Below are positions 9,669 to 63,922 of a DNA stretch of 64,000 nt, piece by piece. Made by a program: the position numbers and the translations under genes. This stretch comes from Oopsacas minuta (lineage: Eukaryota > Animalia > Porifera), in the NCBI GenBank assembly GCA_024704765.1, contig JAKMXF010000088.1, positions 434,001 to 498,000 of the forward strand, in the 5' to 3' direction. Positions within the stretch are counted from its first letter, which is position 1; every line of letters begins with the position of its first letter. The notes beneath the pieces are model-generated. The model had not been told where the DNA came from. It saw only the letters and a program-made list of their open reading frames with translations, and did not search any database.

Positions 9669-10826
9669 ATGACAACAGGAGTTGTAAATCAAGATCAGCA
9701 TTCATTTGATATTTTGCACGCAGTTATAAGCTCAACACTTCAAAAGTTTTACAGCAATACAATTAACTGGGAATACGATGATATATTGTTGGATATTTAT
9801 CGAGAATTTGAAGATAATATAGATAATATTCCAGAATCAATATTCAAGCTACATGGAGGATTAAATACCGAGAAATTCACAGTTTTTCGCGATTTTGCTC
9901 GCCTTGGCCTTATTCTTTATCAGTCAAGTTTCCTCGATTTCTCTTACAATTATGACAAGGATTGGGGTTCGAAATTCGCATCGATCCCTTCAGAAATATA
10001 TTTATTAACAACAATTTCCTTTCATTTATCTAAACTCAGTCAAACAATTCAAAGTTTAGATTATTTCCAAATGATTATCTCGCAACTAAAGTTTGAGATG
10101 TTACTAGTAGCATTTTTGTTAAAACATCCTAGTTCAATTAATATGGCATTTTTGGCTTATAGAGATGAGAATTGTAGTGAGACAGATCAAATATTTAGAC
10201 TCCAAATCCAGGAAATCCTATCAATCAAGCAGGGTGAATTACACCTACATCTTCGCAAGATGTTACGATATTTTAAAAGTAAACGTGTACTCTTACTCTC
10301 ACGATTAATCAATGATTTTCGGGCACTAAATGAGAAGATACTATATGAAGCAATACAAACGTTTTTTTCTCTTGAAACTAATTCATGGACTTTGTCACAT
10401 AAATTCTATGATTTTTGTGTAAATGCTGCGATCGATCCGTTATCAAATGAAGACATGAGTACACACCCAAAAGTGGTAATCGATAGCCTCAATGGATTTT
10501 TGAATAATAACAGTGAGGGGGACTTCGATAGAGAGACTTTAATTAATAATTTTCCATTTTCTAAAGTGCCCTGCTCTGATATTCCAATAGAAGAAGCGAA
10601 TAGAGTTATTTCTAAATATGTAGGACTTGATGAATTGAGTGAATCTTTTTCTCCAGAAGATGATCAGGGTAACTCGTTCAGAGGATTAATCGATTTCTTG
10701 ATTTCGCTCATTGAAAGTTCGGATGATGTTATCTCATTTTTGAGGTTAATGTGTGCTAGAATGCATCCTGCTATTGATTTCTTAGACTACCTTAACCAAT
10801 CTACTGCGTTCCCAAAATGTACTTAA
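9669..10826 (+). CDS. Intronless hypothetical protein, 385 aa, no recognised family
   Basis: A 1158-nt ORF in AT-rich DNA where such lengths are unlikely by chance. ATG start, globular helical-looking composition, candidate acceptor AG at 9654-9655. Confidence 0.7.
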   Translation: MTTGVVNQDQHSFDILHAVISSTLQKFYSNTINWEYDDILLDIYREFEDNIDNIPESIFKLHGGLNTEKFTVFRDFARLGLILYQSSFLDFSYNYDKDWGSKFASIPSEIYLLTTISFHLSKLSQTIQSLDYFQMIISQLKFEMLLVAFLLKHPSSINMAFLAYRDENCSETDQIFRLQIQEILSIKQGELHLHLRKMLRYFKSKRVLLLSRLINDFRALNEKILYEAIQTFFSLETNSWTLSHKFYDFCVNAAIDPLSNEDMSTHPKVVIDSLNGFLNNNSEGDFDRETLINNFPFSKVPCSDIPIEEANRVISKYVGLDELSESFSPEDDQGNSFRGLIDFLISLIESSDDVISFLRLMCARMHPAIDFLDYLNQSTAFPKCT

Positions 10827-11100
10827 ATACATAGAACTAAATATCATTTTTTTGCATTTTCTACTCTATTTTCCAACTGTTCTGGGTTTCCTGGATTATC
10901 CTCGGATATACGTCTTATCTAAGGAAAAACTATTGGATATTTTCGGGTGGAATCGGAGGAAAAGCGTGAATTGCCCTGATTTTTCAAGGAAAATCCCGGG
11001 AAATTTGTATAAGAGGTTGGTAAGTATGCTCTACGTATAAGTATCCTATTCCCATTGACTAAACAATTAAAAGTTCCCTCTCAAATTCTATACAATTAGC

Positions 11101-11123
11101 TATCATTTCTCCCCTGCATTAAG
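11101..11123 (+). promoter_or_regulatory. Candidate (trans-)splice acceptor abutting the TMEM97 ATG
   Basis: tatcatttctcccctgcattAAG|ATG. Confidence 0.55.
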
Positions 11124-11594
11124 ATGCTAGCTCGCTACATAGATTGGGTGTGTATCGTATTCCTTATAATCGCGACTATAATGGCTATAGTCATAGATTT
11201 ACAACCTCTATACCCTGAATCTACTCCTGTTATTAAACACATCCATAAAGCATTCTGTGATGATTACCAAAGCACTCTACTATGCTATGACACACCAGTT
11301 TGGCTACATACCATGACGTATATACAGCTTGTGTTCGTAATCCCTACGTATTTACTTGGGATATATGGAATGATATGTCAGAGAAATTGGGTTAAAGATT
11401 ACATGCTAATGCTCGGCTTCTATTTACTCACAACATCTATTGTGTATATTGTAGAGACCTATTATAATGACAAATCTCCGAAGAAGACATTATTAATTTA
11501 CTCAACTATCCCATTTGTTGTTATCCCTGGTCTTATGGTATTGAGGTTCTTAGCAATTGAATTGCCATACTCTAGCAAAACGAAGACTGAATGA
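11124..11594 (+). CDS. TMEM97: TMEM97/sigma-2 receptor-like EXPERA-domain membrane protein, intronless, 156 aa
   Basis: Four hydrophobic segments. IDLQPLYP ~ MDLQAVLP, TPVWL ~ PPAWF, QLVFVIP ~ ELVFQLP and NWVK..TT ~ KWIR..TT against remembered human TMEM97. C-terminal KxKxx ER-retrieval signal (KTKTE). Confidence 0.8.
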   Translation: MLARYIDWVCIVFLIIATIMAIVIDLQPLYPESTPVIKHIHKAFCDDYQSTLLCYDTPVWLHTMTYIQLVFVIPTYLLGIYGMICQRNWVKDYMLMLGFYLLTTSIVYIVETYYNDKSPKKTLLIYSTIPFVVIPGLMVLRFLAIELPYSSKTKTE

Positions 11595-12024
11595 TACACT
11601 GTATGGCGTATGTATGGTTATATTACGATAAATTCTTACTACACTAGACTCTTATTAAAATTATACAAAATCTATACGCATAACATTATGTGTGTATCTG
11701 TATCGACACAAAAACAAAAAATTGTTACACTTTTTGCTCGACCAGATTTACTAATATGTAATTAATACATATTTATTCATTACATGCATAGTTCTATTAA
11801 AGGAAATCTTATTAATATCGCCTTATGCGAATAGTATTATAATGGGAATTTTATTCGTAAGCAACATATTACAATTCTCCCATGATTTACGCCATTAATG
11901 GGTTTATTCATTTTCGTAGCAACATATTCTGTTGTAAAGTTTATATGTAGAAACATATGCGCTACGAATAAAGAAAGACTCTTATTAATATTTATATAGA
12001 AAATGTAATGAGTATTTGTACGTA

Positions 12025-12115
12025 CAGTAAACTTCCGTTTTAACGAAGTGATTCTTTACCCTCAATAGCTTAAAAGTAATTGATTTAATTCCGCTTATGA
12101 CGAAGTGATTTGTAT
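12025..12115. mobile_element. MITE family D fragment (other copies ~14988-15067 and ~62506-62640)
   Basis: TA|CAGTAAAC start; shared gaagtgattcttt..ccctc.atagctt.aaa.taattgat..tccgctta core at all three loci. Confidence 0.7.
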
Positions 12116-12701
12116 GTATGATTGCGTAGCATAATAGTAATTTGATTTCTCTGTCACAGATTTATTAGTGATATTTTTAATAGAGTTGATTCTGTAAAAA
12201 CGCAGCAAAATGGCTACCTAGTTTGTGTGATAAAATAGGAATGAACATGTTTGTATAGGCTAAGTAAGCTATAAAAGTCTTGACATCGTAAAGATTGAAA
12301 TAGTCCGCTTCAATGATAAATAGAGTGGGTTTCGCTTATAAAGACACCTGTTCTTTTCTTGTTAACTTCACAGTTAAATTTCAATTTAGAGTGAGACTCG
12401 ATTGAAATCTGTGAGACTAGACCAATTTCAAAGTAGACCTTTGAAAAGTAAACCTTTTTATTTCAGTATGATATTCAGAATAGGATCTACGTGATCACAT
12501 TTTATCTTATCCCATGATTGTATTGTATATTCATTGATTAGCCACAGAAGTATCTCTAATTACTATTTCCCATATCTACTCAATTCTTGGTTCTTATACT
12601 CTCATTCTATTTTGTGTTTTATATAAATTCATATATTTTGTTGCAATTTCAATAATTTTGACTAGTTTTATGCTTTGAAGTAAGAATTTTGACTTTTATC
12701 G

Positions 12702-15700
12702 ATGGAACTTGATACAGCAAGAGTAGCAGATTATTTTGTTATTTGTGGTTTGAATACGAACAGTCGTCCAGTCCCTAATCTCTGTGAAATACAGGAAGTT
12801 CATTCGGTGTCTTCGTTAGAATATGTGACACACATAACTGCAGTTAGATTTGATGAGAAGATCCCAGCGGAATATGTAGTGAGGAAGAATACACCAGCTG
12901 GACATAGGGTTGATTTTAGGATGTCAGAATTTACTACTAATTATTTTCATTTGTGTTATAAGAAGAGTAGAGATTTGGATGGGCCTGTTAGTCCTATTTC
13001 TGAGATTAGGTGAGTTGCTGCTATTTGTTGTAGAATTGTACGAACTCTCTATTTACAGTCAACTCCCGGTATATCGAAGATAATTACTTCGATGTACCGA
13101 TGAAATATAGGATACTTTGGTTTGGGACCAAATGTGTACATATTTCAGGCTTCGATATTTCCGTGTTCGACATAACGGAAGTTGGCTCTAGAGTCTTTTG
13201 ATCCTAAAAAGGAATATCGTTCGGTCATTAGTAAAGTAACGCAAAATTCAACACAGCTTTCCAATCTTTATTTCACGTTTTGTCATATATTGTAACTATC
13301 CACCCTCCCTAGACCATTCTTTAACCGTCTAACGGCCACATTATAATTAACATCTCAATAATAGACCTGAAAACTCAATTATTTTCCGTTTCTAAATTTG
13401 TTTGTTTATTTTAAGATTGTTTATTTTCATTTTTAGAGTATTTTTAACAGACACAAACCTACCCAGAGATTTCCAATTAGTAGAATGGCACTCATCTCAG
13501 AAACCTGTTAACTTTGGTTCATTAGGAAGAGAGATCTATCTTGGTTATAGAACTACAATATTACATGCACATACTGTAGCTATCACAGATTTAAATCTTA
13601 TTTGTGTTGATAAAGTGAGTTTTCCATTTCCTGTTACGTATTTGAAATTTTGCTAGGATTTGTGTCAGGTTCATCGACGTTCCTGATTTTGTGAACAATA
13701 TAATCTACTGTTATTTGAAAGCTTGTTTCAGCACACCACACATCCAATTTTGCTTATTTCATCGTTCTATCACTATAAACTGTATTATCTAGCTTAAATA
13801 ACCATGGATATATATATATATATATATTATACTATCTACGGTAGAACGCAGATAAGACATACACTCGGGTCGATGGGGTATCGTGAATCTATAATTTTTG
13901 AAATTATCCAGGTTGAGGGCATTCCTGTTATCTTACAAGTAATATTCCGTTTAAATAATTATAAATTCGTATAAAGCAATCATGTTTGTAGGTGTAAACA
14001 CATTCGTAGCCTACATTTACGATATATCAACGTATTTGCGTGTCTCTTAGCAACATAAAGTTATGTCTTAATCAAACCTGAATTTAATTACTATATGAAT
14101 AGTACAATATTTCATTCGATAATACTCTAGCTAAACTGTCTTGAAGTTGGTCAAAACACATGAATTTTGTATTAGGATTATTTTACTGTATTCTAATTCA
14201 GTGAGAATTTATTTATACAATTTCTATCTTGGATATCAGCTGGTATTTTAAATATCCGTGTTTGAGATAACGGGAGTTGAATGTATATTTATCCTATATT
14301 TCTGAAATTCTCTTTTCTTAGGGAGAAGTCCCCCCTCCGGGATTCAAACGATTGAAAAAGAACCTTGACAATCATATAATGGTAAGCACACTCAACATAT
14401 GTGAATATTATGTCTTAATGATATTTTAATTATAGGCAAAATCAAAAATACATTTATGCTATAAACTTGCTATGCCCAGACCCAAAGCTGTTTACTACAC
14501 TCCAGGTATGAGTAGTCTATTATTATTCTTTTGATAAATGTTTGTTTGTGTCTAAAAATATGGAATTGCTAACCATATGCATTTGTGTAAATTATCATTT
14601 TCAGTAGCTATTATTTGGATGTCAGCGTTTTGGTTTTCTACGATCGATTTGCTAAGAATATTCAATACAAAGTTTGACTATTCATAATTTGATCGTACAT
14701 TTATGCACTAGATCTTCGTCTACAGATTCACCCTTATTCTAGCAATAGTTGAGGATTATTTGTGTATATTTCTTCCGTAATTAAGTGTCATGATTGAGTT
14801 GTTTCGAGTATATTTTAGCGAACTTAGACACTTCTATAACGGTGTACTTTTTAATATATTATTTGGGTTTATCTTCAATTAATTTTATTAATGATTTCTA
14901 ATCAGCAACCTTGATAAGCAAAAGTAATGGTTATTCCATACGAATTCCTATATACCAAGTTAGCTGCCGTAATGTGAGATCAATATTAAACTCTCGTTAT
15001 ACAGAAGTGATTCTTTGCCCTCTATAGCTTGAAAGTAATTGATTTTCTCCGCTTATAACGAGAATTTCCTATCGATTGCTACCATGAAAATCACATATTC
15101 TTCGAATCTTCTATTCTATAACTAAGATATTCGAACCTTATACTTCTATTTCACTGTTAATTTACTATTTTCAGTATTCACAGCTGATCTATTCCTTAGA
15201 CAATATAGTTAACATGTCCAGTTTTATCATATACTACATGTGAATTTTATCATATACGTATATCGATTGAAGAATTTGAAATATTTATTTGGTAATTAAT
15301 ACGCAAGTGGATTTATTAATACGATCTGAATTACGTTTTCAAGATATTGCCACTCCAGTAATAATCTTACTTTTTCACTGTACGTAGCGATAAGTATTGT
15401 AAATTTATTTATTACTTATTTTGTAATATACTGGCTAGAAATGCGATTTCCATATTTTTCTGTATTTCTGTTATTTCGTTCTATGATATTTATACACCTC
15501 AAAATGCACTTAACAAATATTCTATGACCTATAGGGGACCACCAAGGGGCCCATGGACCTCAGTATCGGGACCGCTGCGATTCCAAAGCTTTTTGAAAAC
15601 CCCCTGAATATTTGTGGAACGAAAAGCCTGTACCCGTTTGTATCTGAATTTTTCGCAATTATTATTATGAAAAACGGTAACCTTTTAAAATCTTACATAC

Positions 15701-18700
15701 GTAATACCCAGCTTTATACCTATTATCTGACAATTCTAATCAGATTGCGTACGATTTACAATATATTGAAAGATATAGACCCTTTGAATTAGCACTTTAT
15801 TATAATGACAGAGCTAGAAGATCATACGATAATAGAACTGGTACCCGAATCTATTGCAGAACGTATTTGGGGCCTAAGTGAAATGTTCCCAGAGCGTGTA
15901 CAAACTGTTACTGGAAGTTTTACAACCAACACTGTGAAGGGAATTATATTTTCTTGGAAATTTATACGTAGTTCTCTCTGGGTTTTGAGTACGAGTTTGG
16001 CAATTGGTGTCCTACCATTGGTTGTAGTTCAACAGAGAATAGCGTTTGAAGATATGATGAATGAGCAGAGGAAACAAGGATTATTCGGCCCTGCTGTACC
16101 CGGTGACCCCAGCAGTCAACATGAACCGATGCGCACTTGAGACATTTATACGTATATGTCTTACTTATTAGTTAGAAAACATCGAATTATTAAACTATTT
16201 TAATGATCATATTGTCATACGTGTAATTTCGACTCGATTACTTAATTCATCTTAGAAATTGCATTTTGAAAATATTTGTCCTCTGGCAATATCAGATATT
16301 TACTTATTGTACAACACATGTAAGAATATTTTACTATTCACTGCTGCATTACTTTAACAGCAATGCTAAATCAGAATATAACTCGAGTAGTTATTTCTTG
16401 CTAAAAATACTATTACGTCACTCAATACCACCTCATGAAGATTATTATGCTTCCAACCCATTTCTCAGAGCTGAAAGTACAGTATTTTCTTACAATATTA
16501 TCATTCTTTTACTATTTATTAACTCAAAATACTGAACTAAGCATTCCTCTATAAATACCATTCACTTTCAACAGCTGTATATTTACTAATTACGTATATA
16601 CCTTTTATTCCGTTCTAACTTTCTCCAATATTCTTTAGAAATTCTGAGTTATTACCCAACAAAAGAATACCCAAAAGATCCGTTAGACCGGAACATATTG
16701 AGTTTCTGTATGCCAGCTGGTGTCAGTATAGAAGTATATGATGAAGATACTCTATGTCCATTACCTACTTCTGCTAATTTTGTGTTTACAAGAGATGATG
16801 GAGTTAAAGTTAGTTGCTGATTTATTGATATAATTAAATTACAAATTATCTAGTCTGAAGCCTGCGTCAAGGCTTCCGGAGGTGTTTTGCTTCTTGGTCT
16901 CAAGCTTAGTTGACTAATTCTCATTGAAAAAACGGCTAATCATGTATTGCAGTGTTCCCCTGAATAACCACCGGGGGATAGAAAAGGCAACAAGACTTGT
17001 GGATGAAATTAATTATCACATTCCCATATAAGTAACTGTTTGAGGACGAAACCTAGGTTGCTAATACTCAAACTCTACTGTAATATATTTCCTGTAGAGT
17101 TATGGCGTAGCTGTTACATTATATGAACCTGTACCAGAGGATCTTAGAAAAATAGATATGTTCAAATCACTTAATGTAGAAGCTAGTAAGAAGGTAAGTC
17201 CCGCCTAGAATGTGGGTATTTATTGTGGATACAGTATAATCTTCACAAACGGGCCTTGTAGAAACGAGAAACTTCTTGAAACTGATCGTTTTGGGGGGGG
17301 GTATAACACTGTATGAAAATTCAGAGAATTTTGAAAATGTGTTTGTATTTTAGCCAAACTTATTTATGAGTAAAGCAGTAGTTATAACATCTAAATGGCC
17401 TTTCTTTCCTGCATTCAGAACGTTCTTAACAACTCTATACAGAATATCTATCTCTAAATCTGTAATACCTCTTGAAAGGTATTTATCTTGTCTGTGTATT
17501 TGTGTGTTCTATTTTAAGACAATATTCCGTTTAGATATATTTATAATTTCATGAGAGGAATACCATTTCCTAAGCCAGATGGCTCTAAAGTTATGATGCA
17601 GGTAAGTATTTGGTTGTCTTTTTCGCGTATCTGTTTGATTCCAATTGATGATATGCCTTTATTGCAGTTCAAACTTCACAATGTTCTTTGAACATAGCAA
17701 TACTTATGCTAACCAATTTTATATTTCAATATTTTCCTATGGATAAGAAGTGAAATTCATGGAGATTAGAGATCTCGCAAGTATGTATCTCATCAATTTT
17801 ATCTAATATATTATATTATAGATAGGACCTGAAAGTATATTCTTCTCACCACCAGTCAACACATTAATGCCTCTTAAGTGAGTCATCTCAATAATTTCCT
17901 ATTTATCTTTCTATTCCCAAAGTACCATATGTTATCTATTTGTATTATTATTATTTAGCACAGCTCCATTTCACACTCTCCTACAGTGTCTCAATCCTAA
18001 GAATATAATTACACTCATACACTTGGTTTTATTAGAGCAGAAGATAGTGTTATTATCTTCTGTACAATCTACACTTATATCTGTAGCAGAGTCAGTACAA
18101 TGTGTGAGTATATACGTATACAGTGTTTATAGCATATTAGCGATTCGACTAATAGCAAAATCGCCATTAGCAACTTTTTGACGTGGCTTAGGACACCTTA
18201 TTGGCTCTTTTAGATGTGTCTTAAGGGTCAATTTCTAACTAATACGATACTACTGATAAGACTTATAGATTATAACTTTCCCTTGGTGTATTAACTACAG
18301 TGTAAACCTTAACAAACGGAGTGACAGGAACGCCGAAAAATGCTACCCAGTTTGTGGAGGTTCATTTGTATGGGACTATGAATACGCTTAGTTTGTTTTC
18401 ACTCCGTTTTCAGAAGTTCCCCGATGTAGAGGTTACACTGTACTCATAATTCTTATTTCATTCTAATAGTTACTCTACCCTTTTGAATGGCAAACTCCTT
18501 ACATTCCTTACATCCTGGATACCATGACAGATATGTTAGATGCTCCTGTCCCTTTTATATTCGGTTAGTTTCCAGCTGACTCTACTACTGAATTGTGTGA
18601 TATGTTTAGTTAGCTGTATTTAATATTTGATTATTGCAGGTATTCATTCTTTGGATTTTGACGTTGTTCCTTATTTGGAGAATCCTACTAGTGAAGTTAG

Positions 18701-21700
18701 CTTTGTTGATTTGGATTCTGATTATATTTACGAGTAAGTTCTACGGAAATTTGTAAACATTATTGATTCTCCCTACGCTATGGATAATGCTTAGCATTTG
18801 AGTTTTGATTACACCATAGTGAATAATATTACGGGATTATAGGTTGTATTTTAGCGGATTATTCAATTTTTGGCGGGATTTCGATCGTGACGTAGCATGT
18901 TGCACTAGTTTAGGTTGCTAAAATGCTGGAACTACCGCTTTTGTGACGTTTCAGCGGTACATAACACTTGATTTGTATCGAACATTTTCCAATTAATATT
19001 CACAATAACTGTATTTGAGTAAAATTTATGTATATTATTCCTAGAGGAATTTCTACAAAAGAATTAGCCAGATTAGCACTGCCAAAGGTGAGAATTATTA
19101 TTATATTTCTGAGTAATTGCAGTAGATTTCGGATAAGACGTACACCTTCTCGAAACAATAATTAATACTTCTTGCCTGTGTTTCGCTATTTTACATTTTT
19201 ATTAATTACGCTAGGGACCTTGTAAATCACTTCGTAGAGCTCTGACAGAGATCAGACAACATATCATTGGTAAGATCAAGTTATACTTTTAATTTACTAA
19301 TATTATATATCTTAACATTACATTTTCGTAGGTATGGGATTGTCAGCAGATGATTTAGCTGTAGATCTAGCTCCAATTAATATCACTGCCCGCGTGGAAG
19401 ATCAATTGGTATGTAAGAGAATACGTACAGTAGACTCCGCTAAATGGAGCAACCGGTTAAGCTTTAGGCCCTCGGTTTTTCGAGTCAACACTCTATTTCC
19501 GGGCCAATAAATTGTGGATATTGAGTTACTTTTCGTTTTGATTTCGAGGTTCTATACAAAATCCGTCGAATGACGCCAGTAGGTGTGTCTCTCAAAAATA
19601 TCTTACAAGCAAATTTAATAATTCACCTGTACAGGATTGGATTAAACTTTAGCTTTCGTCATAGCTCACTAATTACAATGTTTACAATAAACGTTATCAC
19701 GTTTGTGCAGGAAAAACATTATAATTATCAAAATTGTAATATAATACAATTCAGCATTATTTTAATAAATTCAAAAGTCCCATTTGCATATTTTCAATGC
19801 ATTTTACGTAGCTGTATTACTTGATTATGAAACCTTTGGAAGTAACTAACACTTATTTGTGACTTAATTATTCAATTGTAAGATTATTTAGAGTTTTAAT
19901 AGTTTAATTATTTGATAGTTTCAGCCATTTAAACCATTTTGCGGTATAAATAAGGCGAATTTTACAGCTGTTTGAGTGATGAAACAATTTCAAATATTTG
20001 TGTTTTATAGGCACGAATTGATCTTTTAATTCAAGATGCAATGTTGAGGTTCATGATAAAGCTTTTTACTCCGTACAGATCTTGTTTGATTCAACCCACG
20101 TCAGTGACAATTGACCATAATGAATGTTTCAATAGAAAAGGTATTTCATGTCGGTTTTGTATTTCGGGCCATGGATAGTAGTCAAGTCGTGGTAAGGAAA
20201 ACTTACAACTGACTGTACACTGTACAGTGTAATCTCCACAAACGGGCTGCAATCTGCCATGGACACTGAAAAATGCTGCTCCATTTCCCCCGTTTGTGGA
20301 GGTTCATTTGTATGGGATTCTTCACCCCGTTTCCATAGGCTCCATTAGTGGAGGTCTCACTGTATTTGGGGCTGTTTCTTGCTGTCAGTTGCCCATTCGG
20401 CGTTCCTTATTGACCAAAATTGTTAAGCGATTTTATTTGCGTATTTATATTTCAGGTTTTCTTCAAATTATGTCAAAAAACGAAAGAGGTTTTTTCATGG
20501 AATTTTTCGATACTCAGGTAATATATTTATAGATTTATACTTACAGTCAACTCTTGATACATCGAAGCACAAGAGACTAATTCCTTCGATCTAAGCATGT
20601 ATTTCCATGTATTCCTGTTCGATATAACGGGAGGTGACTGTAGATGATATGACGAATTTCTATTTGACTTTATCCTGTTATATTTGTATTATTTAGATGT
20701 TCCAGAAATTTATACAAGACCGCTTCACAGATGTTGAAAACAAATTGAATTTTTTCGATTCTTGTATTACAAAGGTATTTACGTGGATTATATGTACTAT
20801 AAAATTTCTATGATTTTACTATCTGTATATTTAGATAAATGCTGGAGCAGGCAGCAAAGAACCACTTATCGAATATTTCCAAATACAGTAAGTGAAGTTT
20901 GCATTCAAAATCAGTTTGCGGCGAGCATTGAATATTTCATTATTCTTATAGTGCAGATGCTATTGTCCGTACAGAGCCTGTTAGTAGTAAAGGGTTACCA
21001 CCAAATGTAACATACAGGTATGAAAAATTCATATAAAGAGGGACATTTGGCCCCTCTCTCCAAAAATGTACATTTCATCCAATGATCATCACGATTTCCG
21101 TTATATCGAAGCTCAATCGATAATTCCTTCGATATTACTGATGGAATGAATATTACCTTAACTGATACTGTGCTCTTTCTTTTAGCTATAATACATTTCC
21201 AAACTTAAATATGGATTATTTTCCTGAAGATGTTGAAACTGAAAAGGATATTATTCCTAAAAATTTCTCTCAACAGCTTGATGCTACGCGTGTGCTAAAG
21301 GTAAAATATGTGTGAATTTATGTAAAGTTAAAAAGTGCAAATTTGTTCAATTCCTTGAATATTTGGCCTCTTTGAGAATAGCAGATATATTTCGCATATT
21401 TTACATACATTTCTATGGTGTTATTTTGTTGTTAGGATGCTGTAAAGTACAAGCACGATCCATTTAAATGGCCGCGGTAAGTTACCTTGTACACCTTGGA
21501 TAGTAAGATATGCAATATGAATTATATAAACTCAACTCCTGTTAGATCGAACACTGATATATAGAAATACCCGCTGATATCGATGTCTAAAATTGTACAA
21601 ATATGCTCCCAATCCGTCAAATTTACACATATTTTCACTGGTTATATCGAAGTAAGAATCGCGATCCCTTGAGCTTCGGTATAACGGGAGTTGACTGTAT

Positions 21701-24700
21701 TTTCGCAAATAGTATTTACCTTTGATATTATTCTATTTAGCTTCTTATTGGGTCAATGCTACTCCCTCTGGTTCTTATATCTTCCAACATTTATACAGAA
21801 TAAATCTGCTAGTGAGCAAGTTAATATCGGAAATGAATGTCTATTGGTATGTTTGGCAGTTATTCGTTTATATTCATGTACATATCCATTTATGTGTTTG
21901 TTTGTTTAGCTTTTAGAAGCAATTCGCAGTAAAGATGTTCTTGTTACAGACGAGGTAAATATGTTTAGCTTTAGCAGTTGTGCATGAAGGTTTTGTCCAT
22001 CAAATATACACTGGATACCCCCCCTTTAGGAATTGCAATATATGATTTATTTTCATTCATAAAGCACATTCAAATGTAACAGATTTTACGCTTTTTCTTC
22101 TAGGTTGCATACTTGAGGCTTATGGAGATTGGCTCAGAACAAAAAGATCTACAACTAGTACGGAATGTTTGGAAAGATTTAGAAAGAGGAAATACTGAAT
22201 CTTCTACGAATATATTCACTCTATATTCAAAGGTTAGAAAATTGAAATATTCGAATACTCGTTTATATCCAGATCAGAAATTGTACAAACACGGTCACAA
22301 ACCCTGTCAAAGTAACAACTTTCATAGGTTATAACGAAGTAATTATTTCGGTCCCTTGAGCTTCGTTATAACTGGAGTTAACTGTACCAACATTTGAAAA
22401 ATTCATATTTTGCGTAAAATTTATTTATTAACATATCCATATTTATAGGCTCTTGATAACTGCTACACGAGGAGAGCACAGCTAAGATGGAAAAAGAGTA
22501 TTATAGCAGTTCTATTCTTTACTTCCTTATACAACAGTGCTACAATAGCTGGAGGTTCTCCTTTTAACAAATCTCTAGCTCCCCGAGGTGATCTCAGACG
22601 GAGAGTCCTGAGGGTTAAAAAGAAGATAACACTGGGCTCGTTCTATCCCGAGAAGATTAGAATCAGTCCTATGCATAGAGATGGTAATGACGTCATGATA
22701 GAAGATGAAGAATCGATGAGTGATTTGACTGTTGAAGTTTTGAAACAAACTGTAATTGATCCAGCATGTAACACTATGCTTGATTCGGATTCCGAAGACT
22801 CTATGTTTAATCCTCCTTCTCTTTCACCTTCTCCTCCACCCCCAGAGCCATCTAGACACACCCCTAGCCCGGTTTCAATACTCTCTCTACCCCCTATACA
22901 AATGCTAAGAGAAGCTAAGAAATATTTTAAACATTCACTGAAGAAAACTAGTGTGCGTTTGGTTAATCATCATGATACAAAACTTGAAAATGTTGTAAGA
23001 GTTAATAATGAAGATTCTGATGCTGCGTTTATTAATAAGGCGATGGCTCTTAAAATATCTGATCGCCTGCAAAATTCTATTGAGGCCGAATTGGAGAGTT
23101 CTATGGTGTTGAAAACTGCATCTGTTAGCGGTATGAATAATCGATTGAGTAACTCTCAGATTCTGACTAGTAAGGATTCAGGTTTTACTGAATTTACGGG
23201 CTCTAAAGGTAAGTAATTACCGAGTTCATAATTTTCCATTTATACAAGCGGATACCAACATTTTTTGTATTGCAGCCTATTGGAGGGAATCCACAGAGTG
23301 TGTTAAAGTTTCTATAGGGTCTCCACGGGTGACAAATATTGGGAACCGCTGCATAGGGGGGTTTTTAAGTGGCTGTTACCTTTAACCACTTTCATGAAAC
23401 AAAATTTGGATTCTTTAACGAGTGATAAAACATGAGTTTGACTTGGAGTATCAAAATACAGTTGTGTTTTACTATTTCCAATTCTTCTAATAGCGAATTC
23501 CACCTTTTTTCATGGACATAACTGTATTTTGTATTGGAAGTAGTTCGCATGAATTCACGTATTTGCAAGGAAAGTTCATGCAAATACAATTTGCTAATAT
23601 CCGAACTCCACTGTAGTGATTTTCCTCCAAATTTTAGGAGCAATAGATGTAGATCGTAAAGAATACTCTTCAGCAGATAATCTAACAGACACTAGACAAC
23701 CTCAACACAGCTCTACACCTGATAGACTTGCCTTACAACGTTCTGTAACAACACCCAACCCAAAACTCTCACCAACAGACGATTCGTTAGCAAACGAAAC
23801 TCGGTCAACTTCATTTTCACCTCTTCCAGAACCTCAGCAGAAATCAAGTAACAGTCCTCGGAGAGTTGTCAATCAAACCTCATCTAGTCCTGATTCCCTT
23901 GATAGCTTACGTACAGATAGTAGTAGTGGACAAACTCAAATTCATCCTTTTACTTCCCTAGTAATATACATGTCTAGTTCTACTAACTGTCCACATTGTA
24001 TGAGACAGATATATGATGAGGAAATTATTGCCATGTGGGCTGCTGAAGATATAGACTTGCAAATCAAGTGAGTGTTGTAACTTATCCCAGCTGTTCCCAA
24101 CCTGGGTTCCACCTGATCTCGAAATTTGTATTGCTGAGTACTCCTATTTATTTTAACGTGTTTATGTATTATTTAGATGTCAATACTGCGACAAGGAACT
24201 CATCCCTAAACTCACAATTCTAATGCAAGGGGTAACGAGAATTTATGACGTAATTCTTATACAGTGTAACCTACACAAAATATTATCCCGTTTGTGGAGG
24301 TTCCTTTGTATGGGACTAGGAATTTGTTTCTAGAAGTTTCCCCGTTTCTATTGGCCCCACTTTATAAAATGTAATTAATAGGCTATGGTGAAGGAATCAA
24401 TTGTAAAGAAGAAATCTATCCAACCTCATCCAACAAAATCTTTGAAAACACTATTTAAGAAATCAATCAGTGCCTCAACAGCTGAACACCCTTCAGTCAG
24501 TCGCAAATCATCTATTACAATGCCACGTAACCCCGTGGAAGCTGCCATAATTCCAACACCTTACATATATAGTGATGTATCTGAACGACTAACAGCGGCC
24601 ATCTTAGAGGACACAGAGCTACAAAATGTCCGACTTCATACTGACCTAGATGATGACGTGTCCGAGTTACAAGGTTCATATGATGATTCAGGGATTTTAC

Positions 24701-27036
24701 GCGCTAATTCTTTTGCGCCAGCTGATGAGACATACCAATACTATCGTGCTTATACATCTGGTGTTCGTACTTTACCGAAACGTGTACGGCCACGGAAACC
24801 GCCGCGATCACAAATACAGAGTACTTACAATGCAAATGTTCCTTATTTCGAATCAGCATCAAATGTGCGGTCGCGTGTACAGAGTGTTTATTATAATCAT
24901 TTATCGGATTCTGTGAGTGTCGACAGAGGGGAAATGTCAACTGCTTCTTCCGTATTCTCACTTGATAATAGTTCTGATCTAATGGAAAGTCCTATGTGCT
25001 TTGAACGTACGAGTTTTATCGAGGAAAACGATCAATCTATTTCTCAACTTATACGGAATAATCTAGAAGGAACTGATCATATACTTTTTAACAAAGATGG
25101 TAAAGACAATTGTCTTCCTGATGAAGGTAGCATGCCTTTTATTGGGAATATGAAAAACGATAGGAAATTGAGTACAGCATTTTTCCCGGATGAAAATACA
25201 ACGACTGATCCGTATTTGGAGATTAAAGATGAACTTGCATCGAAGTTAGAGTCTATGCCTCTACGGTCTGGACGATCCCAATCTGGTTCCTCTACACCCA
25301 GTGGGAGGGGCTCACCTGATGTACGTGTCGGACGATATGAGGATTATATTTCTATTCCATACTTAAGTCCTTTAGTGTTGAGGAAGTCTCTAGAAAATCT
25401 TATCAACAAGGAAGGACATGAGTTCTTGAGTACTATTGCCTTTGTTAAGAGATCTCCATTCATTTATTGGAATCTTGTAAGTTCATTTATTCAATTTTTC
25501 TTTGGTTTTTGTTGATAATTTGTTGCAGTCAGCCAACGCGATCATACAGTCAACTCCCGCTATATCTAACACGGATATATCCAAATACCCGCTTATAACG
25601 AATTGTGATATTGTACATATATGGCCCCAAACCGTAAAAGTAACATAAATTGCTTCGGAGGAATTATCACGGTCACTTAAGCTTCGATTTAACGGGAGTT
25701 GAATGTACATGTTGTTTGTTTATTTGTTTATTATTTACTTTTGTAGATTTGGTATTTTCAACGTTTAGGCCTTCGCAGTCATCTACAAGACATTCTACTC
25801 AAGGTATTTATCATATTTTAAATTTTGAATACAATAATTTATTCGTTCAATTCTCCAATTAGTGTGTACACTATAAGAAGTGTTATATAGAGACTCTATG
25901 GGAACCTATAGGTCCTGAGGTGATAGTACCATTCTTACATTCTTTCTGGAAGATGCGAAATTTGAACCGTAAGTATATTATTCATATTCAGTGTAACCTC
26001 GTTAAAATACGAACTCTACCGATTAATATACCTCCTCATTGAGCTATTTAGTTCCTACCTTTATAATGGGCGTAACCAAATACTAATTACCAACTGTGGT
26101 AACTATGGAAACTGGGAATAAATCTCACAGTATAAATTTGGTGTGCTATTTCTTGAAGGGGTACCAAATTTCGGTGATACCCTGTTCTCCCTTGATCCCA
26201 TTAAAATAATAATTGCCCAGCTAATATTCGAGGAGATACCTTATTTCCTTATAAATCTGTATAACATTATGTTATATTGTAGAAACGATATCTCCTAACT
26301 CAACACATAGAAGGATCCAGCAAGTAGAACACATCTTACAAGCTATATCAATTAATGTAGAGTGTATGGATCTGGTAAAAGCCGCGAGACATATCCTGGA
26401 TAGTAGGAAGTTAGATTCACCAGATGCTCCTAGTCCTAGCATGTATAGGGAGATGTTGTTCTTGTTCCTTGTACTAACGAAAGATGATAACAGTGATATG
26501 ACAGGTATATTTCGTGACTATAAAGTTTTGGGATAATTACGCGTGTTAATGAGAATTATTTCAGCTCCACATGATGTCCATATAAGCATAGCGGGCGGGC
26601 AGTATTTCATATCACATTATTCTATGACGTTATCATAACACAAAATGGCCAATTCATGTAAAAATTCAATGACTCAACTTCTAAATATGTTAATTAAGCG
26701 TGTTAAAGGAGGTCTGTGAAGATATAATCACTGTTAAAATGGTGAAATAATGACAATATTCATGCGACAGGTAAACTTGATGCGAGCGGAGGAGCTGAAA
26801 TAAGTTCCCAACTAACAGTGGCCTTAGTAATATACCAGATACTCACGTCACTTTCTATTGAATTAAACCCTGTAATTTATTATTTAGAAAAACTACGGAA
26901 ATATGATCGTCATTACAAACAGACAATAAGCTACCTGCCAAAAGAATACTCCCTCATGTTAACACAATACGACCATATACCTAATGACGTCTTTATACAC
27001 TGTAGGAAGATATTTGGACCTCTGCGTATAATTTGA
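12702..27036 (+). CDS. DENND4: DENN domain protein 4 (MABP-uDENN-cDENN-dDENN-PPR; Rab GEF), ~33 exons
   Basis: Starts RVADYFVICGL. Exons include 12702-13009, 13437-13614, 14322-14381, 14436-14505, 16639-16808 (FCMPAG), 17354-17478 (SKWPFFPAFR), 18470-18563 (YPFEWQTPYIP), 20697-20776, 22449-23208, 23638-24067 (CPHC..YDEEIIAMW), 24382-25476 (PYLSPLVLRK) and 26888-27036 (CRKIFG). A few minor exon edges are approximate. Confidence 0.92.
13056..13188. mobile_element. MITE family A, internally deleted
   Basis: Both TIRs, TA flanks. Confidence 0.82.
13808..13826. repeat. (AT)n microsatellite
   Basis: Directly visible. Confidence 0.8.
14218..14282. mobile_element. MITE family A fragment
   Basis: tatccgtgtttgagataacgggagttgaatg terminus. 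Confidence 0.7.
15805..16140 (+). CDS. TOMM22: Mitochondrial import receptor TOM22, intronless, nested in DENND4 intron 4 (14506-16638) on the same strand
   Basis: ESIAERIWGLSEMFPE ~ ETLSERLWGLTEMFPE; TM segment SSLWVLSTSLAIGVLPLVV with the conserved Pro; C-terminal QGLFGP ~ QILLGP. ATTAAA at 16189-16194 downstream. Confidence 0.92.
   Translation: MTELEDHTIIELVPESIAERIWGLSEMFPERVQTVTGSFTTNTVKGIIFSWKFIRSSLWVLSTSLAIGVLPLVVVQQRIAFEDMMNEQRKQGLFGPAVPGDPSSQHEPMRT
17232..17311. mobile_element. MITE family B, short derivative
   Basis: TA|cagtataatcttcacaaacggg ... taacactg|TA. Confidence 0.72.
18298..18440. mobile_element. MITE family B
   Basis: Both TIRs, TA flanks. Confidence 0.85.
20225..20362. 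mobile_element. MITE family B
   Basis: Both TIRs, TA flanks. Confidence 0.85.
20544..20640. mobile_element. MITE family A, short derivative
   Basis: Both TIRs, TA flanks. Confidence 0.82.
21528..21697. mobile_element. MITE family A
   Basis: Full core and the right TIR. Confidence 0.85.
22254..22384. mobile_element. MITE family A
   Basis: Core and ggtcccttgagcttcg..ggagttaactg end. Confidence 0.8.
24262..24371. mobile_element. MITE family B, degenerate
   Basis: Left TIR and core. Confidence 0.75.
25547..25705. mobile_element. MITE family A
   Basis: Both TIRs, TA flanks. Confidence 0.87.
26540..26823. mobile_element. Putative PIF/Harbinger (Tourist-like) MITE, family G
   Basis: TTA flanks; right end ggagctgaaataagttcccaactaacagtggcc; body colinear with 44325-44654. 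Confidence 0.75.
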
Positions 27037-27256
27037 GACCATTAACAATAGGCGGCCTTTTCCTATTTTACTATGTCTTTCGACCTGTTACACATATTTA
27101 TATATCAACCATTTGTTGTACAAAATATAATTCTATTTGCTGTGCACATTTAAATCGTACTTGTATTGTAAAATGAATAAATTTTGTGTTTGGATGTATA
27201 ATTAGAATTCTGGAGTGAATCGTTAATTTTCTCTCATAGATAATATTTCGGATTGA

Positions 27257-27403
27257 GGGAACTTCTCGGGGAACTTCTGGTAACGAAGTGAAAAATATTA
27301 GAGGTAATTCCTAGTCCCAAACAAATGAACCTTCATAAGCTGGGATGAGAGTAGCATTTATCGGCGTCCCTGACACTGTAGCCCATTTGTGGAGGTTACA
27401 CTT
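27257..27403. mobile_element. MITE family B in the DENND4-VIPAS39 gap
   Basis: aattcctagtccca core and tttgtggaggttacact end. Confidence 0.78.
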
Positions 27404-27689
27404 TATATGATAGGGACAGCAGTATTGCTGATTTAGAATTACACCATTTTTGACCTGGCTACCGAAATATATGTGTATTAACCGGAGCTATTAGCATGGT
27501 TTTGTTTCTGGACAAGTGACCCGTATTTAGAATGTTGACGCTTTGTGTGTTGTGTTTTTCTCCAAATATTCAAAAGATCACACTCTGAACTACATTTTTG
27601 CAATTTTTAGCATACTAATAGACAATATTTTTTATATGAATAATTGTGACCCAAAATACACTCCAACATTGTCTTAGAAATTAATTCAA

Positions 27690-27708
27690 GAATTGATTCT
27701 TCAATTAG
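27690..27708 (+). promoter_or_regulatory. Candidate (trans-)splice acceptor of VIPAS39
   Basis: ttgattcttcaatTAG|aaATG. Confidence 0.55.
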
Positions 27709-27710
27709 AA

Positions 27711-29105
27711 ATGGACGCATTATCTCCACTTTTATCAAAAGGTGCATCCAAGAAAGAAGCGAATTATTTTAATTTTGATGATGATTTTGAATCCAAATTG
27801 ATGTCAGATGAATACCAGGATGTTTCTGCGAAAGAGTTTCGCAGTTCTAGCATTGCACACCAAATGAAGGATTCTGTATTCACAGTCCAAGAAGATGAAT
27901 CGGGTATCAAAATAGGAGCGCCGATTTATCAACCAGAACTCGAAAAAATCGATATATCTAACCCTGAAACTGTCAAATTTACTACAACACCAGAAAAAGC
28001 CCCAGAAGAGCCGATTCCAGAAATTCTGGAAAAAATCGAAAGTGCTATTGAGCCTAGTGATATTATTCGCGATATTTTTCTAGGCAAACATACTTGGATT
28101 GGCAGATTTAGGGAACTTTCGAAAAAACGCGAGCTATTAAAACTTGCGTTAGAAACATACGATCAAAATACTATTTTCTCAGTTCTTTGGCATTTGAAAG
28201 CGACTCTTAGTAACGAAGTATTGATAAACACATTGGATGAATTTCCTGCTTCAAAACTGCATTATTATACTCTTTTACAACAGAAAGGACTAGAGGAGGA
28301 ATTAATTACAACCACACATGCTTGCAAGGACTATGGAAAAAGTGGTTTGTTAAAGTTAAAACAAGCTAGGAGATTAGGTGATCCCTACAAACAATTTCTT
28401 ATGATGAAAGATTGTGAAAATTATTTCAGGAAATTTGGGTTTATACAATTGGCGGATTTTGTTTTGGATGAATGTGATTTGTTGGACGCTCAACTTTCAA
28501 TTCATACTTTTGAGAAATCAACTGGCATGATACAAGAAGGAATAGGAAGTGTAGAAATATTCAGTCCAGTTCTGAAAACACCGAACTTTACAACTTTATA
28601 TTATCTCTGTCTACGACATTTTCATTCGAATACTGGCTTATCTTCTCCGACTAATTTCCAAGCTAAATTTGATATCTCAAATGCTGATTTCTTGTGTATA
28701 GCATTGAGTGCTAGATCACAGGTTAAAGACTGGCAAAGCGTTGATAATCTACTCAAGAAATACCAAACTAAAACCTGGTTTGGTAAAAATAATTCATTCG
28801 TGTTAGCCCCAGAGAAAATTATTGAGATTTTCCATCAAAAAGATCCTTCCCCGTGGGTCGCAACTGGTAACGAATTGAGAGACAGTTTAATAGTGTCTCT
28901 TCTCAACCAAATTGAGGACTTAGAAGAGAGATATTTATGGTCTTTTAACTTTTTATGTCATCCTGTTGTTATCGATACTCTCGTAAAATTGAAGGACAAA
29001 AATCGATTAGAAAATTATGTTACATATTTGCCTCGTACTTCAAAGTATTTGAGACAGATTGGTGACAAGCTTGCGGCTAAGTCGATTATTTGGAGAGATT
29101 CGTAG
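27711..29105 (+). CDS. VIPAS39: VPS33B-interacting protein VIPAS39/SPE-39, intronless, ~464 aa
   Basis: FNFDDD near the N-terminus; [40 protein letters not shown] ~ [52 protein letters not shown], KTWFG and terminal IIWRD. First ATG is at 27711; the ORF track's 27693 start is a TTG. Confidence 0.9.
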   Translation: [464 protein letters not shown]

Positions 29106-61078: not shown

Positions 61079-63922
61079 ATGGCCTCTATTGAACCTATTG
61101 CCCTCTTGAGTGAGGAGGAGAAGATAAAGAAGCAGAAAGCTTATGAAGAAGGAGTAGCTAAACGCTACGAGGAGAGAATATCCAAAAAGCAACAGAGAAA
61201 ATCTAATATTGAGCACAAACCTGAGGAAACAGTTGACTACTTCTGGAAAGAGTTTAATTCTCAGAATTCTGATATTAATTCTATGTTTGAGCAATTATCA
61301 GAAGCTCTAGAGCCTAACACTATTGCTAAAGTAAGTTAGTATTGTATATTGAAGATGAGGAATTACATTTTCGTATGAATAAACGATCCAGGACCCGGAT
61401 AAGAAACGGTGCGACCGGTGTTAATTGTCAAGGGAACATGTCCCCTGCTCACTCTAGCGACGACCATTTGCTTGTTTCAATGACCATTGACTCTGGAATT
61501 TTCTAGTTTTGTATATTTTCGAATTGGCTTGTGGCTGATAAAATTCAATTAAACATTATTCGTTTGCATATTGTCTCTGTTATGATTACTCGAGTATTTC
61601 TCTGTAATTTGCTAGAAGAACTTTCATTATTTGTGGCTAATTCTTGAATTATATATTTGGCAAAACGGTGAATTATGTAATCTAGTGGATTATTCGTTCG
61701 GTTCATTCATAGACTACGAAATCCATATTAGTTAATTGTAGCAAAATGATAAGAATTACAGGTTTACTGATTAATATATTTAGTTGGAACTCTTATGATT
61801 CAGTTATTTTAACCTAAAATATGTTGTCATGTATATTTCATTTGTTTAAGGGGGCGAACTCTGTTGATACGTACAACTTTCAAGTTCCAACAAAATAAGT
61901 TCCCATTCATTATCATACGATCTCTATTCATATTAACCAGTTTAAAAGATAAAAGACCGTGACGCTAAGACGATCAATTTCTAGTTTCCTTATACGTACT
62001 CCCTTTTCTATGAATCATTTCTGTTAATACAAAACTCCCTATATGATGCACAAAATTGTAAGCGTTGATTACAGACATTTATGGGTGAATGGAAATACAG
62101 TCGACTCCGGTTAATCGGACCACTGGTTAATCGGACAATTCGGTTAATCGGACCATTTTCTCCTGGACGGAATCTAATCTAATCCAGGATTAATATTTAA
62201 CATTTTTCGGTTAATCAGACACTCCGGATAATCGGACCACTTTACTCTGGACAAAAGTGGTCCGATTAACCGGAGTCGACTGTATTTCCTAATTAGCATC
62301 TGCTGACATTTGAAATTTGTTGCGGGAAGCTTTTGATGCGTTGCAATTTATTGGTAGATTAATATGATTTCTCACAGGTTTTCCTAACTGCAATTAGACA
62401 ATCATTGCGCCAGTCAGTAAATTTACATATTGCCAATTTTGTCATTTAGCAAAACAATCAAGGAGTAATTGGAATCTGGATATGGGTGTAGCCAGTGGAA
62501 GTGGTTCTCCCGTTATAACAAAGTAATTCTTTCCCCTCTATAGCTTGAAAATAATTGATCTCACTCCGCTTACAAAGAAATACCGCTCCTAACGAAATGT
62601 AACCGGCATGCTGAGCACTTCGTCATAACCAGAGTTTACTTTAAATATTCACATTTTTCCCATGTTTTGGACATAGTACAAGTTATTGGCACCTGCAGTT
62701 ATACATGAATGAAGAATCACTTTAGTTTATACTTCTAATTGTATACTGAATTTTGAATATTGAACTTAGCATTGTGCCTTATTGCAGAATTGGATTCAGT
62801 TTTGGTTTATTGAATTTATATTATTGTTGACGGAAAATAACATCAGTGTAATTATTTAAGGATTCGAAAGACAGGTTTCAGTGGAAGAAGAGTCCGAATC
62901 TTAGAAGTTATCTATTGTATAATCTACATTTCAAATATCCTTATTCGAAACTACATTTACTAATCGTATGTCACACCACGAGCTATTTAATATGTTGTCT
63001 CATTTATTTCAAAATTAAGACAGTGAAACCTCGGCGTTCCTATTTTTCCGTTTGTGGATGTTACACTGTAGAAGGTCAGTTTGTATTTTTTACGAACTGG
63101 AAATTTTATTTGAGATATTTCATATTTTCTAAGCTTGAATTCCTTCAAATTTCCTTATGTTTTTAGGAGATTGATGTTAAACTGGAAATTATGCAAAAGT
63201 ACATGAATGACTCTATACTCTTCCTGAATCCGTTTGACTTAAGAATAGCACAATCTACTATAAAGAAATTACAAGCTGATTTAACTAAGGAACGAGAAAA
63301 ATACGCGCCGCGGAAAAAATTCGGTTTCAAATCCAGACAGAAACAGACACAAAATGGAGGACAAGTCCCCAAGAAGGAGCCTTCTGTGGTTGCTAAAATC
63401 TCTCCTGCGCCATTACCAGCAAGCAAAAACTCGTTTGTATTGAAAGACCGTAAAAATGAGAATATTATAATCACCCCAGAAGAAGTTTTCAACAAAGATT
63501 TGTTAATTCTAAATTTAGACAATTGTACACTTTACATACACAGCATCCCCGCTACAGTCCATATGACTAATATTACTAATTCTCAGATATCATTCGGGCC
63601 CGTTAAAACCTCAATCATGATACACGACTGTGTTAATACAAAGTTTTCCCTCGCTTGTCAGCAGCTACGTATACATACATCAGTAAAATGTGATTTCTAT
63701 ATACACGTAACGAGCCGAGCAATCATTGAAGATAGTTCAGGATTACGTTTTGCCCCTTTCACTAATACATATCCGAATTTACAAGATGATTATATGATAT
63801 CTGGGTTAGATGAGAAATTGAATAACTGGGCTATCGTGAATGATTTCAATTGGTTATCGAACAATGAAGCGTCGCCAAATTGGCGTATAATTCAAGAAGA
63901 TCAAAGGATGGCTTGGAAATAG
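61079..63922 (+). CDS. TBCC: Tubulin-specific chaperone C, 335 aa, 2 exons (61079-61330, 63167-63922)
   Basis: MQKYMNDSILFLNPFDLR, PRKKFGFKS, GPVKTSIMI and ACQQLRIH with the arginine finger; C-terminal NNWAIVNDFNWL. Confidence 0.95.
62098..62282. mobile_element. MITE family C, copy 2 (185 bp)
   Basis: Nearly identical to 36146-36297 plus 33 bp carrying two extra GGTTAATCGGAC motifs; TA flanks. Confidence 0.92.

Follow-up and report, generated by a model that had tools for sequence, protein, structure and literature searches.

The window analysed here is a stretch of 64,000 nucleotides (nt) from the glass sponge Oopsacas minuta (assembly GCA_024704765.1, contig JAKMXF010000088.1, positions 434,001 to 498,000 of the forward strand), with AT-rich DNA (GC content 0.30-0.40). 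It carries a gene for a DENN-domain protein, likely DENND4, whose fourth intron encloses, on the same strand, the gene for the mitochondrial import protein TOM22. Comparison with related genomes indicates that this nesting is old and that both genes are maintained. All positions are counted from the first nucleotide of the window.

The DENN-domain host and its TOM22 guest

The host exons were read from the sequence and were translated and joined by script, with donors and acceptors delimited by GT and AG offsets common to several species (Table 1). The first coding exon is a 103-amino-acid (aa) open reading frame (ORF), showing 72-75% identity across all of the relatives described below, and its donor is common to five species. 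The acceptor and the donor of exon 4 are likewise each common to five species, as is the donor of exon 5 at 16808; identity to the relatives reaches 86-91% for exon 4 and 89-98% for exon 5. The joining of exons 4 and 5 across intron 4 keeps the frame open (...AVYYTP-E-ILSYYPTKEYP...). When the exon 4 frame is read on into the intron it stops after 9 codons, and exon 5 starts in the middle of the uDENN domain, without a start codon. Intron 4, with its 2133 nt, stands against other delimitable introns of the gene of about 60-430 nt, and against a mean intron length of 341 bp in the O. minuta genome (PMC10280926). On the opposite strand, positions 13000-18500 are free of ORFs of at least 50 aa.

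The host is a DENN-domain protein. In a Pfam search performed exon by exon, the uDENN match of exon 5 is accompanied by matches of later exons to DENN (E 3e-10, 1.6e-9 and 8.8e-4); exons 1-4 have no Pfam match in the same search, and exon 1 gave no usable match in the protein atlas. The more specific assignment to DENND4 is likely and rests on architecture and on motifs. DENND4 proteins have an N-terminal module (MABP) followed by uDENN, with PPR repeats towards the C-terminus; an N-terminal part ahead of uDENN is the order seen here, and the motifs RVADYFV..GL and the repeated LCYK/LGYR before uDENN presumably correspond to those of human DENND4A.

The guest is identified by homology as TOM22. 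A phmmer comparison aligned residues 4-97 of its predicted product with residues 32-124 of human TOM22 in the TOM complex structure (7ck6_C, E 2e-14), and this match of 94 residues includes the transmembrane helix with its proline; a profile of sponge TOM22 orthologues matched the same structure at E 1.5e-18. Against the Pfam family Tom22 (PF04281) the Oopsacas protein reached E 3.9e-5 and 24 bits, which is under the Pfam cut-off of 28.7 bits, while all eight aligned sponge orthologues matched this family, the best at E 1.5e-7. The protein has a single transmembrane helix, LWVLSTSLAIGVLPLVVV, with P71 invariant in the alignments, an N-terminus rich in E and D that is about 28 residues shorter than that of human TOM22, and a Q-rich tail. 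A search for further copies in the six-frame translation of the complete assembly (61,460,524 bases in 365 contigs), a check proposed in the original prediction that had been made from the window sequence, found the copy at 15805-16140 as the sole TOM22-like match at E <= 10 in these 61.46 Mb.

The same prediction had described exons 4 and 5 as joining in frame across an intron of 2.1 kb that is far longer than the typical introns of the gene, and had placed within it an intact, intronless TOM22 with a candidate acceptor AG at 15791-15792 and ATTAAA at 16189. The present analysis agrees with all of these points of anatomy: the intron is delimited by GT and AG in phase 1, and the 111-aa gene lies inside it on the host strand.

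Table 1. Coordinates of the host gene, its fourth intron and the guest within the window
Feature	Positions	Strand	Basis and remarks
Host coding exon 1, begins MELDTARVADYFVICGL	12702..13009	+	ORF; donor GTGAGT at 13010
Host exon 3 (GEVPPPGFKRLKKNLDNHIM)	14322..14381	+	Read from sequence; block conserved in tblastx
Host exon 4 (AKSKIHLCYKLAMPRPKAVYYTP and first base of next codon; phase 1)	14436..14505	+	Followed by GTATGAGT
Host intron 4, 2133 nt, GT..AG, with the whole TOM22 unit inside	14506..16638	+	Sequence and orthologous introns
Conserved non-coding hairpin-forming element (TCGATC..GAATATTC..TGATCG)	14634..14707	+	136 nt past the exon 4 donor
Dispersed palindromic repeat copy of about 75 nt, resembling a miniature inverted-repeat transposable element (MITE)	14985..15062	.	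At least 40 genome copies, 80-92% identity
Candidate (trans-)splice acceptor AG in GAATTAG/CA (slash, putative splice point)	15791..15792	+	12 nt before the TOM22 ATG; candidate from sequence
TOM22 coding sequence, 111 aa, intronless, single copy	15805..16140	+	ORF and homology
ATTAAA, candidate TOM22 poly(A) signal	16189..16194	+	49 nt past the stop codon
Host exon 5, start of uDENN	16639..16808	+	Preceded by TTCTTTAG; Pfam uDENN E 8.2e-9

Conservation of the nested arrangement

Related loci are present in the glass-sponge-like sequences L002/L004 (labelled Vazella pourtalesii in EukProt), L005, L006/L007, L008 and L009/L010, which together with Oopsacas make up six lineages. They fall into three clades, namely Oopsacas, L002/L005/L006 (the Vazella clade) and L008/L009. 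Five related TOM22 proteins were found, which are 61-72% identical, and in every related locus tblastx and tblastn placed TOM22 between the orthologues of exons 4 and 5 on the same strand. The GT, the AG and phase 1 of the host intron are kept in all six lineages. Since the nesting recurs in the relatives with conserved splice-site dinucleotides and phase, it is not an effect of chance or of assembly, and the comparison with relatives, which had likewise been proposed as a check, thus extends the same-strand, phase-conserving nesting to five other glass-sponge-like assemblies.

In the relatives the orthologous intron measures 1255-1733 nt, with 611-956 nt between the exon 4 donor and the TOM22 ATG and 226-466 nt between the TOM22 stop codon and exon 5. 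The greater length of intron 4 in Oopsacas is due in part to the insertion of the MITE-like repeat, which carries the terminal inverted sequences CTCGTTATA/TATAACGAG and occurs in both orientations throughout the genome; within the window, further copies lie at about 12028-12103 and 62507-62578. The intron parts that can be aligned between clades are the TOM22 coding sequence, some 20 nt before its ATG and the element at 14634-14707, to which the start of the TOM22 3' flank is added within clades.

TOM22 is under purifying selection, with a ratio of non-synonymous to synonymous substitution rates (dN/dS) of 0.10-0.20, and dS is at least 2 or saturated between clades. These values indicate that the nesting is old and that both genes have been maintained. 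On the sequence comparisons given above, the same-strand nesting, including its phase, is ancient.

The genes around the locus also keep their order. Integrin-alpha, EBP, the DENND4-like gene with TOM22 within it and a VPS16-like gene form a microsyntenic block in all six lineages, which spans 9669-29105 in the window; in the relatives the order reads integrin-alpha, EBP, host exon 1, TOM22, the remaining host exons and the VPS16-like gene.

The Vazella TOM22 orthologue is the top ORF (.p1, marked 'complete') of a Trinity transcript in EukProt, which suggests that TOM22 is made as a separate short mRNA. The contigs carrying this orthologue are all genomic. Among the homologues recovered for TOM22 there was no entry from O. 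minuta, look-ups of the exact products of O. minuta TOM22 and of the adjacent EBP gave no record, and a scan of JGI metagenome contigs returned nothing for the locus.

Sequence signals around the guest gene

The element at 14634-14707, of about 70 nt, is the only non-coding block of the intron upstream of TOM22 that is conserved across all clades, apart from the short stretch directly before the ATG; between L008 and L009 these two are the only conserved upstream non-coding parts. Its counterparts lie at 9456-9525 in L002, 9305-9374 in L005, 9178-9246 in L006, 9246-9321 in L008 and 9218-9294 in L009, and across the lineages it is separated from the host donor by 75-181 nt and from the TOM22 ATG by 483-1105 nt. 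The predicted fold has 13 pairs, comprising an outer stem CGATC(A/G)/TGATCG and inner stems, and 97.4% of the alignment cells are paired. There are 2 compensatory pairs, and three cells hold G-U pairs that would fail to pair if the opposite strand were folded; since the alignment consists of six distinct sequences, this evidence for a hairpin is suggestive only. The element also holds the DNA palindromes GAATATTC and TCGATCA/TGATCGA, so that a reading as a transcription-factor site or promoter is equally open. It is therefore regarded as a candidate, either for a promoter or transcription-factor site of TOM22 or for a structural element of the pre-mRNA.

No second copy of the element occurs in the genome: a covariance model recovered only the element itself, and a pattern search gave one other site. 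The element has no Rfam match, and a tRNA scan of it was blank. A long-range RNA bridge between its 5' arm and the TOM22 3' region, which would loop out the guest, was considered and rejected, as the duplex is no better than shuffled sequences (z -1.9 to +0.9) and neither L008 nor L009 offers a consistent partner. The motif TGATC[GA], the core of the hairpin arms, does occur at about 16204-16209, 61-64 nt past the TOM22 stop codon, and also after the TOM22 stop codon in L002, L005 and L006 (+61 to +63), and is absent there in L008 and L009; this was noticed post hoc and may be due to chance.

The second conserved stretch contains the candidate acceptor. The sequence ATTAGCA is kept just before the TOM22 ATG in Oopsacas and in the Vazella clade (L002, L005-7), L009 has TTAG 8 nt upstream of the ATG, and the AATTA core is present in all clades. 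In each of the six lineages the TOM22 ATG is preceded by a YAG at a distance of 2-21 nt, something that chance alone would produce in about 30-45% of cases. In the Vazella clade, a splice at the AG proximal to TOM22 would delete an upstream ATG. The form AATTAG(C/A)A directly before ATG occurs at TOM22 in two clades and also at EBP and VPS16 nearby. This pattern fits a spliced-leader acceptor, although taken alone it is weak.

Such starts are seen elsewhere in the block as well, with (A)ATTAG or TTAG, a spacer of 2-3 nt and then ATG at the EBP and VPS16-like starts in the window (11084-11123 and 27671-27710) and in L002, L005 and L006. Upstream of the candidate acceptor, a GC-richer patch at 15500-15640, unique in the genome, overlaps an ORF of 79 aa (15553-15792); this ORF matches no family and is not conserved in the relatives, and the patch and the ORF are probably non-coding.

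Downstream of the guest, a canonical poly(A) hexamer is found at +26 to +73 after the TOM22 stop codon in L002, L008 and L009; none was found past the TOM22 stop codon in L005 and L006.

Expression of the nested pair and comparison with known systems

Hexactinellids have been listed among the groups that use spliced leaders (PMC7986045), and a trans-spliced leader of about 37 nt was found in long cDNA reads of Aphrocallistes vastus (PMC10282587); the O. minuta genome paper is silent on both nesting and trans-splicing (PMC10280926). The locus is probably best understood as an anciently fixed same-strand nested gene, in which host splicing would pass over the guest and TOM22 would have a short mRNA of its own, with a probable leader and a probable intronic start. 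Host pre-mRNA would be spliced from 14505 to 16639, and the whole TOM22 unit would be removed with the intron. The TOM22 mRNA would end about 20-30 nt past the ATTAAA at 16189, and its 5' end would probably be formed by spliced-leader trans-splicing at a YAG near the ATG, at 15791-15792 in Oopsacas. Its primary transcript most likely starts at an intronic promoter past the exon 4 donor, possibly near 14634-14707; because a transcript beginning in the intron has no upstream donor, the acceptor would take the leader and not exon 4. As by-products of this layout, cryptic splicing to intronic AGs and premature polyadenylation of the host would be expected. Competition between host and guest is a logical consequence of the arrangement and a known concept; as a regulated switch it is unsupported by evidence.

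Several observations weigh against this interpretation. The AG at 15791-15792 belongs at the same time to a TAG that closes an upstream reading frame, and in L008 AATTAC replaces AATTAG and the nearest YAG is 21 nt upstream of the ATG. A position weight matrix was derived from 15 host acceptors common to at least four species, for which the true sites scored a median of 3.0 (range -4 to 12.5) in leave-one-out tests; the candidate scores -1.6 and ranks 31st of 92 among the AGs of the intron, and those at 14817-14818, 15533-15534 and 14606-14607 score better (6.8-8.7). A crude test over 264 kb found YAG within 12 nt before first ATGs in 41% vs 34% of cases, which is no clean excess, and an excess of TAG among upstream in-frame stops is confounded by ordinary intron acceptors. 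Leaders were present on only 4% of the A. vastus long cDNA reads (PMC10282587). The conserved element is nearer to the host donor than to the ATG, and so may serve the host instead. Host splicing over TOM22, the 5' end of TOM22 and its poly(A) site are, moreover, all inferred.

The coincidence of the AG with an in-frame stop, its low score, the L008 substitution beside an AATTA core present in all clades, the small share of A. vastus reads with leaders and the start-codon statistics, which are not clearly positive, would all suit a conventional nested gene, transcribed from an intronic promoter, with its own capped 5' end and no trans-splicing. The AG would then simply belong to the frame-closing TAG and to an AT-rich motif close to the promoter (AATTA). 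This is judged quite unlikely, and against it stand the recurrence of TTAG plus 2-3 nt plus ATG at several neighbouring genes in several species and, in the Vazella clade, the upstream ATG that would be removed by a splice at that very AG.

The original prediction had regarded the same AG as an acceptor that would poison the host. If exon 4 were spliced to 15793, 29 codons would be read before a stop at 15879-15881, and to this extent the claim holds in Oopsacas; by its rank the AG is an ordinary one, however, and the out-of-frame property is not conserved, as the corresponding splice would enter TOM22 in frame in L002 and L009, and only the remaining four lineages would have it out of frame. 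In L002 (9999-10001) and L009 (9993-10001), splicing of exon 4 to the nearest YAG would encode an N-terminal DENND4-TOM22 fusion, not a premature stop. For the suggestion that TOM22 might be freed from the excised intron, nothing was found in support. The lariat of an excised intron lacks a cap, and transcripts are cleaved and polyadenylated while transcription is still under way.

The two genes might also be alternative products of a single host pre-mRNA, with no promoter for TOM22 itself. Leader trans-splicing at 15792 and cleavage after 16189 would then yield TOM22 mRNA and abort the host transcript, skipping of these sites would yield DENND4 mRNA, and the two outputs would compete. The shared strand, the tight embedding (TOM22 of the relatives ends as little as 226 nt, and at most 466 nt, before exon 5), the conservation of the arrangement in relatives and the trans-splicing reported in glass sponges (PMC10282587) speak for such a nested operon, which is nevertheless considered unlikely. 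It would tie an essential housekeeping gene to the promoter of a gene for a Rab guanine nucleotide exchange factor (Rab-GEF). In nematodes, an acceptor goes into cis-splicing when a donor precedes it on the RNA, and by that rule the host RNA should give exon 4-TOM22 chimeras and not leader-capped TOM22; the model is mechanistically awkward because the upstream host donor should favour cis-splicing. No AATAAA or ATTAAA upstream of the TOM22 acceptor is conserved between exon 4 and TOM22 in the six lineages, and the roughly 100-nt spacing typical of operons is therefore absent too. An operon made up of a short upstream isoform and TOM22 was rejected for want of a conserved poly(A) signal before TOM22. 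The acceptor itself is weak and not conserved in L008, the element at 14634-14707 could be an independent promoter, and no operons are on record for hexactinellids (PMC7986045). It is more doubtful still, and in our judgement highly improbable, that the element, the guest acceptor and the poly(A) signal together constitute a cis-RNA switch on a shared pre-mRNA, deciding between DENND4 and leader-capped TOM22, and retained as a device from the ancestor that these glass sponges share.

That there is no nesting at all is extremely improbable. Exons 1-4 and the exons from 5 onward would then be two genes flanking TOM22 in tandem, and their in-frame join would be a coincidence. The missing Pfam match of exons 1-4 would agree with this, but the donor GT, acceptor AG and phase 1 are kept in six lineages despite an unalignable intron, exon 5 begins mid-uDENN with no start codon, the frame of exon 4 stops 9 codons into the intron, and no conserved poly(A) signal follows exon 4. 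An N-terminal module followed by uDENN is also what a single DENND4 gene would be expected to encode.

With the host spliced across an independently expressed guest as the preferred interpretation, the locus is one more case of a gene packed within a gene, a layout already known to be frequent in glass sponges, and does not represent a new type of system. What is new is the locus-specific conserved hairpin-forming element, the only unexplained extra. The locus offers a deeply conserved same-strand case of a gene within a gene, with a core housekeeping gene as the guest, in animals that branched early and employ spliced leaders. Given RNA data, it would be well suited to asking how a trans-splicing organism prevents the host donor from being cis-spliced to the guest acceptor, and also whether intronic guests have their own promoters.

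In A. vastus, 2432 genes, about 12% of the total, are nested, many of them conserved, and there is extensive microsynteny with O. minuta (PMC10282587). Nested genes of that species, for example glassin, resemble the present case in being single-exon genes lying wholly within an intron of a compact hexactinellid genome and conserved between glass sponges. Strand, TOM22 and a DENND4-like host are not discussed in the A. vastus paper (PMC10282587), whereas the Oopsacas guest is on the host strand and is the sole copy of a core mitochondrial import gene. Nested genes had been described in the original prediction as usually antisense to their hosts. For human this holds for about 63% of them; the same-strand orientation, with about 37%, is not unusual (PMC3192792).

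Human nested genes are known to cause exonisation, intron retention and cryptic polyadenylation of host RNAs (PMC3192792). There the interference is documented by RNA evidence in human cells, while at the TOM22 locus it is predicted from sequence; in both cases a same-strand guest brings acceptor-like and poly(A) signals into the host, predicting truncated or mis-spliced host RNAs. Operons resolved by spliced leaders in nematodes and tunicates share with the TOM22 locus the same-strand packing, an acceptor (at TOM22 a candidate) just before the ATG and a poly(A) signal (likewise a candidate there) soon after the stop codon, and differ from it in having an upstream poly(A) signal and an intercistronic spacing of about 100 nt. 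The cholinergic locus, where the vesicular acetylcholine transporter gene VAChT lies in the first intron of the choline acetyltransferase gene ChAT (PMC3053374), is unlike the present one in that the products of its two genes belong to a single pathway and the genes have 5' exons and promoters in common, whereas TOM22 and a DENN-domain Rab-GEF have no evident functional link. The two loci are alike in holding an intronless ORF on the host strand in an anciently conserved arrangement, and at the cholinergic locus host and guest RNAs can come from shared upstream sequence (PMC3053374).

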